The translations under genes and the position numbers were made by a program. This document shows positions 20,741 to 34,215 of a stretch of 64,000 nucleotides of DNA, piece after piece. The notes below the pieces were generated by a model. It was not told the origin of the DNA. It saw only the letters and a list, made by a program, of their open reading frames with translations, and ran no database searches. The stretch comes from Anthoceros angustus (lineage: Eukaryota > Plantae > Anthocerotophyta), in assembly GCA_010909165.1 (NCBI GenBank), contig MU008162.1, forward strand, positions 124,001 through 188,000, given 5' to 3'. Within the stretch, counting starts at the first letter, position 1. Each line of letters opens with the position of its first letter.

Positions 20741-22007
20741 TTACCCCGTCGGACCCAGAATTCTCTTGATTCCGGCCTTTTGCTCAGGAGTGAGTCTCGA
20801 GGGAAACTTGATGTCGAATTTGATCCTCAGGTTCCCCCGTTTCCCTGGCTCCTTGGCAATCGGCATCCCCTCTTTAGGCACAACCTTCTCAGAACCAGGA
20901 CTTATTACTTCCGTGCACGGGATGTTGAGCGTCCTGCCATCTAGTGTTGTCACAGTAGCTGTACACCCTGTAAGCGCTTCCGACAACGGGATCTTGTGAG
21001 TCATGATGAGGTCGTTCCCATCCCGCTTAAAAACCTCATGCGGTCTCTCATCTATCACAAAAACTAAGTCTGCAGGTACCACATTCGGCTGCTCATTCCC
21101 CTTCTCCGGGAAAGTGATCTTCGTACCCTTCTTCCAACCAGGCTTCACTTCAATAGTCAAGATCTCTTCCACAGGCATAGTTTTCCTGCACACACGAACC
21201 CCACAACAATTGTGTGACAAAGGAAGGACAAAAAGCCAAGAGCCATGCACATGGAACAACTTAGCCAAGCCCTCATATCTGCACAGATTTCCAAAACCCT
21301 ATCCATACCCGCTAGCATCAGCGATGTTTCTTGAGATCTTCATCTTCCTGGTGGAGCCATTATACAGCTCTTCCAAAGTGCATTGCAGCTTGTTCTCAAC
21401 GGGGGGAGCCTTCCGCGGCACGGACGACTGCGAACCATCGCCAAAGGAGCGGAACACATTCTCAGTCCCACCGAAACCCCCAAACATACCATCCCCGAAG
21501 GGAGATCGTCCGCTGCGGCTCCCAATCCCACCCATGCTGGGCATACTTCCCATCTGAGAGAAGCTGCCTCCGAAAAACTCCGCAAAGATGTCCTCCGCGT
21601 TCCGAGGCTTGAATCGGAACATATTGGCCGGTCCACCTCCATTTTGGAAGTGCACACCACCGCCAGGCTGGGGAGGTGGAACCTGCCCCTTCAACCCTTC
21701 CTCCCCGTACTGGTCGTAGATTTGACGCTTCTGTGGATCGCTCAAAACCTGCAGCAAGACGCCAGCAATTGCATCGTCATCCCGCTGCCGACGAGGCCCC
21801 GCAACAGAACACGCACAGATGCGGATGCAGAAGAGCACCTACCTCATAAGCCTCCGAAATCTGCTTAAATTTGGCCTCAGCTTCCTTCTTATTATTAGGA
21901 TTCTTGTCCGGGTGCCACTTCATGGCCAGCTTCCGATACGCCTTCTTGAGATCATCCTCGGTTGCAGCCCGGGGGACCTTGAGCACATTGTAGTAATCAA
22001 CGCCCAT
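20741..22007 (-). CDS. Class II DnaJ/HSP40 (DNAJB4/5-like); exons 22007-21843, 21748-21309, 21185-20741
   Basis: J domain MGVDYYNVL...AMKWHPDKN...[25 protein letters not shown], a G/F-rich linker, and C-terminal domain [16 protein letters not shown]...[12 protein letters not shown]...[12 protein letters not shown]. Both GT-AG introns keep the frame. Confidence 0.95.
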
Positions 22008-26294: not shown

Positions 26295-27052
26295 TCTACA
26301 AGGCTGAATGAATATACTCAAGCTTATTTTCCTAATTCTCCATGCGTTTCGAGGAATCGAGCTTTCCTAAATTCGGGAAAACTCCCATGCCATTTTCAAG
26401 GCTCGGAATGCGACTTTGAGAGTCCCCTCAAAATTCCTTGGGTATTTGCTTAAAAAATCCAAACAATTTGAATTGTTGATATGTATTCGAGTTGATATGC
26501 CTTTGTCTATGTCGCTGTATCCGGCTGGGTGGTGTGACCACCCATGTCTGTTTGGTGACTTTCTCTCTGCCTGCGACATGATCCAGACTTGGTTTGTAAT
26601 TTATCTATTTTGTATAAAGTAAAGGTATTTAAAAAAAAAACTTTCGTCATTGATATGGAGCAGGCACGTGCATGCAACTGAGCTGGCCAATGCATTTGTC
26701 GACTCTGCGCTAAAGGCGTGTAAGCGCAGTTTTGGAACAAGAGCTTTGGCGAACCAGGCTGCTGCGGTCTTGGATTATGGTTTACAAGCCTATTCGAATG
26801 CATCGCGAGTTGGAAAATTTGGAACTCGTGTGAATGGTTGAGTTCTGGTAGTAGAAGAGGATGATTTTTGGTGAAACGGATGGATCCGACTCCCGAACCG
26901 AGGTCTCTTCATCAGAGAGCTCTCAGTTGACAAGAAACTTACGAGCTTCTATCAAGGGAGGGCTATGGGCGAAGGATGCCAAGAACAAGATTAGGTCAAA
27001 GGCGTGTGGTATGCATTCTGGAAGAAGCAGATCGCATTCACGTTAGACGGGC

Positions 27053-28217
27053 ATGAGTTCCAGTGGAGCCGGTCCAGAGAAGCTTCAGGAGTACAGGGTA
27101 GTGGTCCCCTGTCTGCCTCTCTACGATTCCCCGCTCTGCACCCGCCTGGCAACACAAGCATGGGAAGGCCGGCACCTGATCATTGTGATGACCTCCTCTG
27201 GTGACACCCGCGCAAGCCGCTCGGTTGAGCTGCCGCATCTGTCCAGGTCACAAGCCCTAACCCCAGGCCTCACTTGATTTACACTCGGAGATACTGACTT
27301 GGCCACGGCATCCAAAGCCAATCTCGGAGAATGAGAATGACGTGTGTGCTACTCTCAGGTCCCCGATCAAGGTGAGTCTTTGTGAAGACGGTTACCAGTG
27401 TTGGTTGGCCCCGGAGGACCTGGATGCCATCGTCCCAGTTCCTGAGCATCTGCATTACCGGGCACAATTGCTTCCAGAGAAGGAAGTGAGGTTGAGGACC
27501 GCCCTTGTCGTAGACTTCGTCATGGTGGCGTACAAAACTGAAAACAGTTATCTTTGGGGAGGAACTTGCGGACCCAACTATGACTGCAGTGGTTTAGGTG
27601 ATTTTTGGATGAGACTTCCCTGCACGCTGCGTCAGTCGGATTTCACTCTTTCTGATGAGATGGGTCTAGTTGTGTGAACTTGGCAGTACAAAGAGCGTTC
27701 GCAGCCGCTGGCATTTGGGTGCCGAGGGATGCTTACCAGCAGGTGATGTTTTGGGTTACGGGGCTGCTGCGATCCTGAACCTCCCTCCCCTGAAATGAGT
27801 TTCTTGCTCTTGTTCAGGAGGGTTTTGCGCAGCGGGTACCAAACAGCGACGTGCAGACTGGCGATCTGGTATTGCTGCTGCGTTCCTCGCACCTACACCC
27901 TTCAGTGACGAGGACAGGACACCTAAACTATTTTCTGAACCCATAGCATGGTGCAGGTCTTCTTCGGTAGTAGCAAAGCAACTCACGTCGGCATCATTTT
28001 GGATGACGCGTTGCCTGAGGTCCACAAGAACAACTCCGCGTTGTACGGCCCCGAACGTCTGCCTCCTGTGAGGTTCATACACAGCTCTGGCAAGGAACAT
28101 GGGCATGGAAGGATCGAAGTGGATAATCTAGGCCTGCCACGGGGTCCTGTTGCCATGCACTACTGTTCCGCGTACAGGGGAGCTGGAAGAGTGTTGCAAG
28201 TCTTCTCCCCTCCGTAG
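27053..28217 (+). CDS. Cyanobacterial-type SH3b + NlpC/P60 cysteine peptidase (gamma-D-Glu-diamino acid endopeptidase / dipeptidyl-peptidase VI-like); exons 27053-27246, 27359-27597, 27687-27742, 27818-27868, 27957-28217
   Basis: Spliced product: LPLYDSPLCTRLATQAWEGRHL...VSLCEDGYQCWL...NSYLWGGTCGPNYDCSGLVQRAFAAAGIWVPRDAYQQEGF...GDLVFFGSSKATHVG...FIHSSGK...YRGAGRV. The Cys-His-His triad is intact and four GT-AG introns restore the frame. The first donor site is the least certain. Confidence 0.9.
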
Positions 28218-28682
28218 GACTCGAGCACAAGTGAGTTGTTGCAGCCTATTACCAAGAACCCATACTACAGCTGATGGGTACAGTCACATTTCTCGACTCA
28301 TGTCAGTAGACGAAGTCCCCCTTCACGTCAGCCAGACAAGTCATTCAAGCACATCCCCATTGGCCCGGGAGCTGCCTGACGTTGGCCAAGCTGCTTTCAG
28401 AAGAAACCAGCAACACCTTCGGACAAAACCTCACGGCACTTTTCCCTGCTTAGACACAGCAGAGGTTTGTGACCGCCTTCACAATTACAAAACGCTACAG
28501 CAACATCTGAAACAGTTGCAGGCCATCGCTACCTGAGCTTGGCACGCTGCTCTGGGAACAGCGCCTGGGTGCGAGCTGCCTGATCCTACTCTCATGCTAG
28601 GCGGTGGCCTCACAGTTTTCGTGAGAAGTTCCACCTGCTAGCCCGTCTAACTCATGACCCATGCCATGCGAGGATCAATGAC

Positions 28683-29926
28683 TCATATTTTCCTCCTCTT
28701 CAAAAAAGTTAACTTATCATCCACACTCCCTGGATCAATCTGCAACAAACGTAGCACCGGTCAGTGCAGGACGATATGGGAAGTCGACCGCTCCAATGCA
28801 GCCACAATAACCCTAGGCAGGTTGCCAGTAGTCATCCCGGCAACGCTCAATAAATACAAGAAACCCGCAATATTCACATACCTTATCTTCGGCGATTAGT
28901 AGCATCTGTCTGACTTCATCATCTTCTGTCAGATCGGCTGGAGTCTGCAGAGGAAACGACTCATCTCCGTTAGTACTCAGGCTCTTGTCTGATCACATGG
29001 CACGTCGATCGTACATGTGCCAGGAAACCAATCCGCAACCTGATAGGAGTTATTCTTCAAATTCGGCAAAGCTCCGTGATTTAACAATTGGCGCACAACA
29101 TCCGCATGGTCACCCCGTGCGGCATGATGCAGGGGCTGCATGTACATCACACGAGATGTTTCATCTGCAACTGCACAGAAGAGACTGCGGCCATGAAGAT
29201 AAATGGATTACTCCAAGGTCCGTTCCACAAACCGTGTCACCATCTGTATCGGTAGCTTGCAAAACCCGTACGAGCTCCTCCTGGCTCTTGGTAGCTCTCA
29301 ACAACATCTGAACAATTCCATCGAACCCTGCACTCCCCAAAACACCAGCCCCGCTCATAACGCCGGAATTCGCCAAACCCACCGAGCTTGGATCCGGTAC
29401 ATAACCAGCTGGAACAAGGATAACTCACCCCCGGCAGCGGCATCATGCAAAGGCAGAGCCCCATCCTCATCCCTGACATCCACGCTTGCTCCAGCTGCTA
29501 ACAGAAGCTGCAGGTCACCAGTCATTCTAGCCTGACCACCATCCCCGCCAAGTTACAAACCTAAACCATTTCATTACCTGGGCACACGGCATATGGCCAT
29601 AGAGGCATGCAAGGTGCAGTGCTGTATCACGGTCCTCGCCATACGAATCAACATTTACTGTCAAATTACCTGCAAACAGAACCCAATTCCGCCTTCAACA
29701 CACGGAACGGAGCGGAACACCATCAGACCGACCAATCATTGCAGAACACAGGATCACAACCTAACGCGCGGGACAGGCTCTCCGCGTTTCCAGCCTCAGC
29801 CGCAGAGAGAACAGCTTGCAGGTCCTCAGAAACCTCCACTGCCTCATCTCCCAAGCTTCCGATCCAGTCTTCATCTCCTTCTCCATTCGCCCTCGCACCC
29901 ACATCAGAACGCTGTGGAACAGCCAT
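28683..29926 (-). CDS. Ankyrin-repeat protein (multi-exon)
   Basis: Exon fragments AAEAGNAESLSRAL / DRDTALHLACLYGHMPCAQ / LLLAAGASVDVRDEDGALPLHDAAAGG / DTDGDT-PLHHAARGDHADVVRQLLNHGA / TPADL are separated by GT-AG introns. The last exon is tentative. Confidence 0.8.
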
Positions 29927-30048: not shown

Positions 30049-31190
<1,142 letters not shown>

Positions 31191-32449: not shown

Positions 32450-34215
32450 GTTCCAGTTTTCTACATTTCAAGAGCATCGAGGAGGCACGGAATTTCATGG
32501 GCCACTTTGGCACTACAGACATTGACAATCTTGTCGTCGACTTGCAAGGTACAGTGTGGAAACATCATCCGGATGACAATATTAGTGTGGGTATATGGAT
32601 GCGGTTCAATGTTGCATTTGTGTTTCACAAGTCCGTTGCTGATCAGTCGTTTTATTTGGGGATTCAGACCCCGTTCATGCTTCAGACCTGTTTGACACAT
32701 GGTAAGAATAATGTGCTCAGGATTGATTCTACGTTTGGTATAAGCCAGTACAAGTACCAGCTCTTCACAATTATGGCATTCGACCTTCACATAAATGGTA
32801 TTCCGGTAGCGTGGATTTTAGCAAAGGACGGTACAAGTGACACCATAGCCAGGTGGCTGATGTCTTTTCATGAGGTTCTATTAAGTAAGGATGCAACTTG
32901 GTTGCCCTCCGCAATATTGGTTGATGATTGTGCAGTTGAGATTGCTGCAATTCGAAAGGTTTACAATTGCAGTGTTCCTTTTCTACTTTGCCTCTAGCAT
33001 GTGCGTCGTGCTTGGCTCCGTAATCTTATTAAGAAAGTCCAAAACAGGGTAGATAAGGAAGCCATATGGCAGGAATTAGGTGAACTGATGTACGTGAAGA
33101 GCTTCAGCACATCAATTCGAGATACAATTCGGGAGGGTGAGCAGTTGCTATTTTCCTTCTATGCCAAGTGGGAGAAACGGCAACCCGCATTCGTGAGCTA
33201 TTTCAGAACAACATGGGGTGCACAACTAGGTTAGTCCATATCTCCAGCCTCGTATTCTCCCTTTTCAAGCTTGTGCACATACACATCTTCACAAGGCCTG
33301 TTTTGATTGCAGGCATGTTCATAAAAAATGCCCGCATGCAGGGCAAGACTGTGCCTTCGCTATAGAGATAGGACATTGGTTTTTTAAGTAGAAACTTAGT
33401 CTTACGAGGGCATCTCTTCATGACAGACGAGTAGACTGGCTGTTACATCAATTGTGCTTCATGATTGCGTCCCATTATTGGTATGTGAACCATTCCAAAG
33501 AAGGAGATTATGTGGTTAACACAGCCGAGGAGAAATTCGTGCACACTGCAATAGATGGAGCAACTCTGATTGAGGATGATAATGTTACTTTGCTTTCCCC
33601 ACCTTGTACCGCGGCTTTATGCAAGAGTTCAACAGATGCCCTTGTGGCATATACATTTAAGAATGCAGATTCCATGTGGGCTACATGTAAGTGTGCTCAA
33701 GGGAGGAAAGGCTTTATTTGTAAACACATCGTGAAAGTGCAGGATATGCTTGGAGTGCTCTCATACACACTCCGGATGAAACTTCAGTATACAACAACGA
33801 ATGATCTGGTAATTCAGGAGCCCGTAACAACTCTTGCTTTTGTGATAGTAGAGAATAGGTGATGGAAAGTATTTCGTGCAACCTACAACCCGTTGTGGAG
33901 GGTGTTTTATGTAACGAAGGCGGAACTGAAGATCAGATTCACTTCCTGGAACAAGATTGCAATGCTATTGTGAATTTGATGCACAAGAATAAGGAAGTCG
34001 TGGGGGATGCACCACTTTTGGTGAAACGTACACTCATGGATGTCCAACGTTTGATTGCATATGAGCAGGAAATGCCTGTAGCACGGCAGCCTCTTCGAGC
34101 ATTCACCACCAACGAGGGAGACAACAACATCGTCAAGACTAAGCCATTCTTCTCACCATCGAAGAAAACGAAGGAGAGAGTTACTTGGAAGTTATTAGCG
34201 GACAAAGAAAACTAG
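32450..34215 (+). pseudogene. Mutator-like (MULE) DDE transposase with SWIM zinc finger, inactivated
   Basis: IDSTFGISQYKYQLFTIMAFD...GIPVAWIL...ILVDDCAVEIAAIR...LLCL*HVRRAW, where the conserved CxWH Trp codon has become TAG at 32995-32997. The SWIM finger reads TCKCAQGRKGFICKH. Further frame breaks follow. Confidence 0.85.

Follow-up and report, generated by a model that had tools for sequence, protein, structure and literature searches.

A five-exon nuclear gene encoding a predicted cyanobacterial-type SH3b–NlpC/P60 endopeptidase in the hornwort Anthoceros angustus

The enzymes closest to the gene reported here are the gamma-D-Glu-diamino-acid endopeptidases of the YkfC/AvPCP subfamily (MEROPS C40), which act on stem peptides only where the N-terminal L-Ala is free, cleaving them at the link from gamma-D-Glu to the diamino acid, and in which the S2 pocket is closed by the SH3b domain (PMC2954226). 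In Bacillus subtilis, YkfC is a cytoplasmic enzyme of murein tripeptide catabolism that acts after an LD-carboxypeptidase and before the L-Ala-D/L-Glu epimerase; the cyanobacterial members carry no signal peptide, and residue roles have been defined for Tyr118, Tyr226, Trp228, Asp237, Ser239, Arg255 and Asp256 of YkfC (PMC2954226). Here we present a gene of this type from the hornwort Anthoceros angustus, located at positions 27053-28217 of the plus strand in a 64,000-nucleotide stretch of contig MU008162.1 (assembly GCA_010909165.1, positions 124,001 to 188,000; hereafter the window, with all coordinates counted from its first letter). It adds to a well-characterised enzyme subfamily a member from a eukaryotic setting not described before: as judged from its sequence, it is a nuclear gene encoding a cyanobacterial-type SH3b–NlpC/P60 gamma-D-Glu-diamino-acid endopeptidase, and three of its four introns coincide in position and phase with those of a streptophyte alga.

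The counterparts of the hornwort protein in cyanobacteria are AvPCP of Anabaena variabilis (PDB entry 2hbw) and NpPCP of Nostoc punctiforme (2evr/2fg0). Like them, it has one SH3b domain and then an NlpC/P60 domain with the catalytic triad, the S2-site Tyr (Tyr64 of AvPCP), the Asp of a PRDAYQQ motif and no signal peptide. Unlike them, it is encoded by a nuclear gene with four introns, carries an insertion of about 20 residues between the two His residues of the triad together with a longer SH3b loop, and reads QRAF, AWEGR and HGH, as do its homologues in streptophyte algae, where the usual cyanobacterial forms in the alignment are QAAF, AA.GR and QGRNG. YkfC of B. subtilis and B. cereus (PDB 3h41) and dipeptidyl-peptidase VI agree with the hornwort protein in the residues of the S2/S1 pocket and in a predicted requirement for free N-terminal L-Ala, but YkfC possesses a second SH3b domain as well as helical inserts and is encoded in an operon with ykfA and ykfB; for the hornwort gene no such partners came to light, and no search aimed at them was made. 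The algal homologues, which are unnamed hypothetical proteins, resemble the hornwort protein in architecture, in their short N-termini and in a lengthened loop between the His residues, although the length of that loop differs among them. DipM, a nuclear-encoded protein with LysM and LytM/M23 domains found in moss and glaucophytes, is likewise a cyanobacteria-derived peptidoglycan hydrolase of lineages with plastid peptidoglycan; it differs in its unrelated fold, in being plastid-targeted and in hydrolysing murein sacculi in division (PMC4015805), whereas the hornwort enzyme should take only free stem peptides. The DipM study mentions NlpC/P60 for Bacillus LytE-type enzymes only, and reports no LytE-like protein in cyanobacteria (PMC4015805). 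LytFM of the house dust mite is also a bacterial-type C40 peptidase in a eukaryotic nucleus, but a single-domain one that is related to actinomycete and ascomycete sequences, of different origin and architecture (PMC4600878).

A five-exon gene of the AvPCP/NpPCP type

The gene model was read from the genomic sequence (26400-28900 of the window), and its spliced form is a prediction. It comprises five exons separated by four introns, every one of which begins with GT and ends with AG:

26861-27046, plus strand: upstream open reading frame (ORF) of 61 codons, in the same frame as the peptidase coding sequence, with no Pfam match
27044..27046, plus strand: in-frame TAG, 9 nucleotides before the ATG at 27053
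27053..27246, plus strand: exon 1, with the ATG and about 12 leader residues, followed by the SH3b domain's first half (LYDSPLCTRLATQAWEGRHL)
27247..27358, plus strand: intron 1, GT..AG, phase 2
27359..27597, plus strand: exon 2, with an SH3b strand, the linker and the start of the NlpC/P60 domain (YLWGGTCGPNYDCSGL)
27393-27395, plus strand: S2-site Tyr (of CEDGY), in exon 2
27585-27587, plus strand: catalytic Cys (of DCSGL), in exon 2
27598..27686, plus strand: intron 2, GT..AG, phase 1, within a Val codon 3' of DCSGL
27687..27742, plus strand: exon 3, (V)QRAFAAAGIWVPRDAYQQ, with the Arg-Asp pair
27728-27730, plus strand: Asp of the Arg-Asp pair, in exon 3, equivalent to Asp256 of B. cereus YkfC
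27743..27817, plus strand: intron 3, GT..AG, phase 0, 3' of DAYQQ
27818..27868, plus strand: exon 4, EGFAQRVPNSDVQTGDL, placed by alignment with homologues
27869..27956, plus strand: intron 4, GT..AG, phase 0, 3' of GDL
27957..28217, plus strand: exon 5, VFFGSSKATHVG, the inserted loop, FIHSSGKEHGHG, RGAGRV and the stop
27984-27986, plus strand: catalytic His (of THVG), in exon 5
28002..28073, plus strand: loop between the two His residues, with about 20 extra residues relative to the spacing in the family (DDALPEVHKNNSALYGPERLPPVR)
28080-28082, plus strand: His as third residue of the triad (of IHSSG), in exon 5
28215-28217, plus strand: stop codon TAG, at the end of exon 5

All five exons are open and every splice site is canonical. 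At intron 1, two nucleotides of exon 1 and one of exon 2 make up an Arg codon, at intron 2 one nucleotide of exon 2 and two of exon 3 make up a Val codon, and introns 3 and 4 lie between codons. An earlier note on this DNA, made from the letters and their ORFs, had pieced the gene together from four ORF fragments and one small extra exon; the ORF list does contain four such fragments, with exon 4 as the fifth piece, and the four GT-AG introns and the in-frame upstream TAG that it described are borne out by direct reading of the sequence, with phases that fit. The same note's assignment of an SH3b domain followed by an NlpC/P60 domain with an intact Cys-His-His triad stands as well, on the evidence of the structural and Pfam matches that follow.

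Similarity searches were run exon by exon, and the exons were kept as separate rows in the alignments. Exon 2 matches PDB 2evr (E 1.3e-16) and 2hbw (E 1.8e-14) with about 50% identity over 77 residues, while exon 5 matches the same entries (E 1.4e-6 and 3.2e-5, respectively) as two stretches around the insert, THVG and IHSSG standing about 21 residues further apart than in those entries. The Pfam profile SH3_16 (bacterial dipeptidyl-peptidase SH3) is split over the exons, exon 1 covering profile positions 1-27 (E 2.6e-5) and exon 2 positions 31-49, and positions 3-19 of NLPC_P60 follow at the end of exon 2. Exon 1 aligns with the N-termini of algal and cyanobacterial homologues, and in the alignment with full-length homologues the five exon pieces together cover the family from end to end, leaving no part out. 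The protein thus has the SH3b domain leading directly into NlpC/P60 that defines the architecture of the YkfC/AvPCP subfamily, and it belongs specifically to the AvPCP/NpPCP type, because a profile of the family finds 2evr and 2hbw at about 1e-90 and all other NlpC/P60 structures at 1e-16 or weaker.

The residues that determine catalysis and specificity in this subfamily are in place. Each member of the Cys-His-His triad aligns to its counterpart in 2evr and 2hbw, and the segment YLWGGTCGPNYDCS supplies Y-x-W...D-C-S at the exact spacing of Tyr226, Trp228, Asp237, Cys238 and Ser239 of YkfC. The Asp of PRDAYQQ sits 18 residues past the catalytic Cys, the same distance as from Cys238 to Asp256 in YkfC, and the hornwort PRDA corresponds to YkfC Arg255-Asp256, its Ala, at position 257, being that of the AvPCP type. 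In the SH3b domain, the Tyr of CEDGY aligns with that of CEDDY in 2hbw, and is equivalent to Tyr118 of YkfC and Tyr64 of AvPCP. These specificity residues are conserved from streptophyte algae to the hornwort.

This arrangement suggests how the enzyme would work. Cleavage would be carried out by the papain-like NlpC/P60 domain through its Cys-His-His triad, with the N-terminal SH3b domain capping the S2 pocket, and the SH3b Tyr together with the Asp of the catalytic domain would bind the free amino group of L-Ala, so that the enzyme would cut free peptides and not those attached to glycan. Its expected substrates are free stem peptides, cut at the bond that joins L-Ala-gamma-D-Glu to meso-diaminopimelate (meso-DAP) whether D-Ala is present or not. 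An enzyme confined to free stem peptides would be one of fragment breakdown or recycling and not one that splits walls; the predicted chemistry should therefore be the breakdown of free tri- and tetrapeptides, not the cutting of intact wall.

The extra segment that had been noticed between the two His motifs is real: 31 residues separate the pair in the hornwort protein, against 11 in 298 of the approximately 320 family members. All eukaryotic homologues have a widened spacing (16-53 residues). In a group of cyanobacterial sequences of Pseudanabaenaceae type, the spacing is 17, a lengthening by 6 residues.

Algal homologues and shared intron positions

Homologues were collected by an exhaustive HMMER search with exon 2, by look-ups and by further searches. 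Among eukaryotes, they were found in two Zygnematophyceae, Spirogloea muscicola (two genes, including SM000026S09000) and Closterium sp. NIES-68 (GJP54943.1), in Chlorokybus atmophyticus (Chrsp78S07707) and in Pyramimonas obovata (A0A7S0N743), and they also occur on marine metagenome contigs with HMG-box and DEK_C genes as neighbours. The matches listed include no homologue from a moss, liverwort, vascular plant or any other land plant, hornworts among them. A scan of metagenomes with exon 2 gave distant matches only.

The strongest evidence on the history of the gene comes from its introns. Mapping of the Closterium exons onto their genomic locus (L001) by exact matching placed a phase-1 intron one base past DCSGL, a phase-0 intron past PRDAFQQ and another of phase 0 past GDL, and these agree with hornwort introns 2, 3 and 4 in both position and phase, that is, for three of the four hornwort introns. 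By our own arithmetic, the chance of such a coincidence is about 1e-6 among approximately 690 positions, or about 0.005 if only some 35 proto-splice sites were open to insertion. For hornwort intron 1 the Closterium model shows no equivalent; at that place it carries an insert, rich in repeats and about 110 residues long, and a search inside that insert for hidden splice sites that could represent intron 1 gave no convincing ones.

Several features of the homologues themselves deserve mention. The insert in Closterium GJP54943.1 (L001 3001-5430) is rich in tandem repeats and lies within the SH3b domain, and the C-terminal stretch of the same protein leaves the family consensus past HSSG, which may reflect a frame or annotation problem or real divergence. 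Two homologues from TARA marine metagenomes (L002 5001-6170 and L003 858-2027) are intronless, sit on G+C-rich contigs and are extended at the N-terminus by about 75 residues with a high share of Gly and acidic residues; they probably come from marine picoeukaryotic green algae. The Pseudanabaenaceae group (P0019, P0059, P0062, P0065/P0389; L004-L006), which was identified from cluster names, has GIC and HGH motifs in common with the eukaryotic proteins, and hints at the kind of cyanobacterium that gave rise to the eukaryotic genes. A genome scan with the Pseudanabaena-like P0019 returned a single weak and unrelated match. Two further candidates, P0035 of Malus domestica and P0008 of Peromyscus (E about 1e-6 to 1e-10 against exon 2), were set aside as repeat matches to the linker with no NlpC/P60 domain.

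Phylogenetic trees were built with exons 1, 2 and 5 as separate rows, exons 3 and 4 being too short, by adding the fragments to a MAFFT alignment of full-length proteins. An initial quick tree, in which several rows were very long or garbled, spread the fragments over the cyanobacteria with no support, and was replaced by trees from cleaned sets. In a 48-row tree, exons 1 and 5 group in one clade (100/98) with the three streptophyte algae Spirogloea, Chlorokybus and Closterium, and the clade persists at 96/85 after the addition of four Pseudanabaenaceae-type sequences, to which it is then sister at 88/84. Exon 2 falls outside this streptophyte clade; it takes no resolved place among cyanobacteria in the 48-row tree and groups with Pyramimonas at 91/96, on long branches, in the tree with the added sequences. 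A Nostocales clade (96-97% bootstrap) excludes all hornwort fragments. Approximately unbiased (AU) tests were weak and rejected none of three constraints: holding the fragments together with streptophyte algae cost 5.4 units of log-likelihood (lnL; p 0.30), uniting all eukaryotic rows cost 8.0 (p 0.28) and holding the fragments together with Nostocales cost 18.8 (p 0.18). The trees favour an algal affinity, which they do not prove alone, and the main weight rests on the shared introns.

Weighing location, function and ancestry

Taken together, these data lead us to a reading that we hold with measured confidence: an intact nuclear endopeptidase gene of the YkfC/AvPCP type, anciently inherited in the green lineage and presumably expressed, whose product is probably cytosolic and would act on stem peptides of plastid peptidoglycan. 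The gene would be cyanobacterial in origin and old in the green lineage, inherited with introns already in place from the ancestor shared by Zygnematophyceae and land plants, with one early acquisition, fitting a transfer from the plastid ancestor, as the probable source. The pattern as a whole points to cyanobacterial ancestry followed by vertical inheritance in the green lineage, from trees that place neither the root nor the donor. As regards location, the best reading, still unproven, is an enzyme of the cytosol that degrades free stem peptides, most likely those released by turnover of plastid peptidoglycan.

Several points weigh against this reading. Its link to plastid peptidoglycan is one that we infer. 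No spliced product of the gene appeared among matches from 15 billion proteins, the searches seeded with its own exons included. The loop of about 20 residues is inserted between the strands that carry the catalytic His residues and may bear on activity, and the letters ttag at 27043-27046 offer a possible in-frame acceptor for an upstream exon. On the side of ancestry, the tree fragments are short with long branches, exon 2 keeps apart from the streptophyte clade, and the Nostocales placement was among those that the AU test did not reject. Since no moss, liverwort or vascular-plant homologue was listed, the enzyme would not belong to the plastid peptidoglycan toolkit in general; on such listings, a restriction of the gene to hornworts among land plants is only a possibility.

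An alternative that we judge unlikely but take seriously is that the enzyme works inside the plastid, in the stroma or the intermembrane space, reaching it through a missed upstream exon or a non-canonical signal, and thus belongs to an ordinary gene of plastid-peptidoglycan turnover. The cyanobacterial enzyme is cytoplasmic, with the stroma as the matching compartment, and the acceptor-like ttag is accompanied by the same-frame upstream ORF, in which a phase-0 GT at 26903 might serve as donor for the AG at 27045-27046. Because the TAG at 27044-27046 closes the upstream frame, any N-terminal extension needs such an extra spliced exon; the one that can be drawn would add about 16 acidic residues, which do not resemble a transit peptide, and the ORF matches nothing in Pfam. 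The gene model itself has no N-terminal plastid transit peptide: the SH3b fold starts near residue 12, no hydrophobic stretch is seen at the N-terminus, nothing stands out at the C-terminus (…VFSPP), and the in-frame stop lies 9 nucleotides upstream of the ATG. The apparent lack of a transit peptide in the earlier note thus holds for the model, and the algal models are equally short, with only 0-20 residues ahead of the domain in Chlorokybus, Spirogloea, Closterium and Pyramimonas. In none of five independent eukaryotic gene models does an N-terminal extension exceed about 20 residues, and in Closterium the next gene upstream is only about 470 bp away. The earlier note had also reasoned that a transit-peptide exon together with orthologues across mosses and streptophyte algae would make this an ordinary plastid gene; the streptophyte-algal orthologues do exist, whereas neither such an exon nor a moss orthologue was found. 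Its idea that an extra-plastid enzyme would act on stem peptides is a reasonable proposal. Its further suggestion of a role towards symbionts or pathogens finds no support, as the protein has no signal peptide, and action against the walls of either is unlikely for an enzyme with no secretion signal.

More doubtful is the view of the gene as a relic whose role has altered or disappeared, either unexpressed or re-used for other gamma-glutamyl or D-amino-acid peptides that have nothing to do with peptidoglycan. Such a fate would agree with the absence of a transcript-derived protein among the matches from large protein collections, with the loop between the catalytic strands and with a patchy distribution, in which no homologue is listed from mosses and liverworts, groups that also have plastid peptidoglycan. 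All five exons are open, however, with canonical splice sites throughout, and every catalytic and L-Ala-binding residue has been kept over the several hundred million years since the split from the algae, which argues for continued selection on the original chemistry.

A fairly recent transfer from a Nostoc-type cyanobiont or another cyanobacterium, independent of the algal genes and followed by intron gain, is very improbable. The raw identity of the exons to cyanobacteria (51-55%) exceeds that to most algal homologues, and the unplaced exon 2 of the 48-row tree, the unrejected Nostocales constraint and the want of another land-plant homologue among the matches listed could all be accommodated by such an event. 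Gain of introns after an independent transfer would, however, have to reproduce three of the four in the position and phase of Closterium, and exons 1 and 5 lie within the streptophyte-algal clade at 96-100% bootstrap; these two observations, with the algal homologues themselves, make a transfer from a Nostoc symbiont unlikely. The long loop between the His residues and the QRAF, AWEGR and HGH motifs are common to the hornwort and algal proteins, and the Nostocales constraint is the costlier one (18.8 lnL against 5.4 for the streptophyte constraint). Nesting inside Nostocales, which had been put forward as the sign of horizontal transfer, is not seen in the trees, as the fragments stay outside that clade, although with an AU p value of 0.18 the test does not formally reject it. 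Of the two origins considered in the earlier note, ancient inheritance therefore gains from the algal homologues, the shared introns and the trees, and a later cyanobacterial transfer loses. The published list of horizontally transferred genes of A. angustus names no cyanobacterial donor.

Bacterial contamination or an assembly chimera can in practice be dismissed: the best structural matches are cyanobacterial, but, as the earlier note had argued from the introns, the coding sequence is broken by four GT-AG introns, and it shares its G+C content and one contig with plant genes on both sides, including DnaJ, ankyrin, L10e, MULE and PPR sequences. The neighbouring features of the window are:

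20741-21838, minus strand: DnaJ gene, intron-split, with a C-terminal domain match at E 2.7e-34
28977-29525, minus strand: ankyrin-repeat ORFs, tail-to-tail with the peptidase gene and about 760 bp past its stop
30209-31190, plus strand: gene for cytosolic ribosomal protein L10e/uL16, intron-split
32497-34215, plus strand: ORFs with domain matches to MULE transposase and a SWIM-associated RNaseH-like domain

The DnaJ and L10e/uL16 genes support a plant nuclear context. A P450-reductase-like gene with a flavin adenine dinucleotide (FAD) domain also flanks the peptidase gene, the element at 32497-34215 is probably a Mutator-like remnant between the L10e and P450-reductase-like genes, and a PPR array lies further along the same contig.

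Implications for plastid peptidoglycan turnover

A full set of peptidoglycan synthesis genes is present in all surveyed hornworts (PMC8964177), and a leaderless enzyme for free stem peptides, of the kind predicted here, would fit the last step in the disposal or salvage of peptides from the plastid envelope. More tentatively, one can picture a possible route through two compartments, in which stem peptides from the plastid envelope leak into the cytosol, where a leaderless enzyme derived from the endosymbiont splits L-Ala-gamma-D-Glu from meso-DAP, for salvage or for the removal of a bacterial-type signal; hornworts would then perhaps be the only land plants to have kept it.

Work on plastid peptidoglycan has so far dealt almost wholly with synthesis (Mur genes and a penicillin-binding protein (PBP)) and with one division hydrolase, DipM. 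To our knowledge, nothing is known of the fate of plastid peptidoglycan fragments on remodelling, and we found no description of this gene or of its algal homologues in the full-text literature searched, hornwort genome papers included. The locus is also a clean example, in a plant that harbours Nostoc, of shared intron positions telling ancient inheritance apart from the passage of a gene from symbiont to host. By bringing a defined peptidase chemistry, as predicted from conserved specificity residues, into a nuclear genome of the green lineage, the gene provides a testable handle on the turnover of plastid peptidoglycan and on the fate of its peptides.

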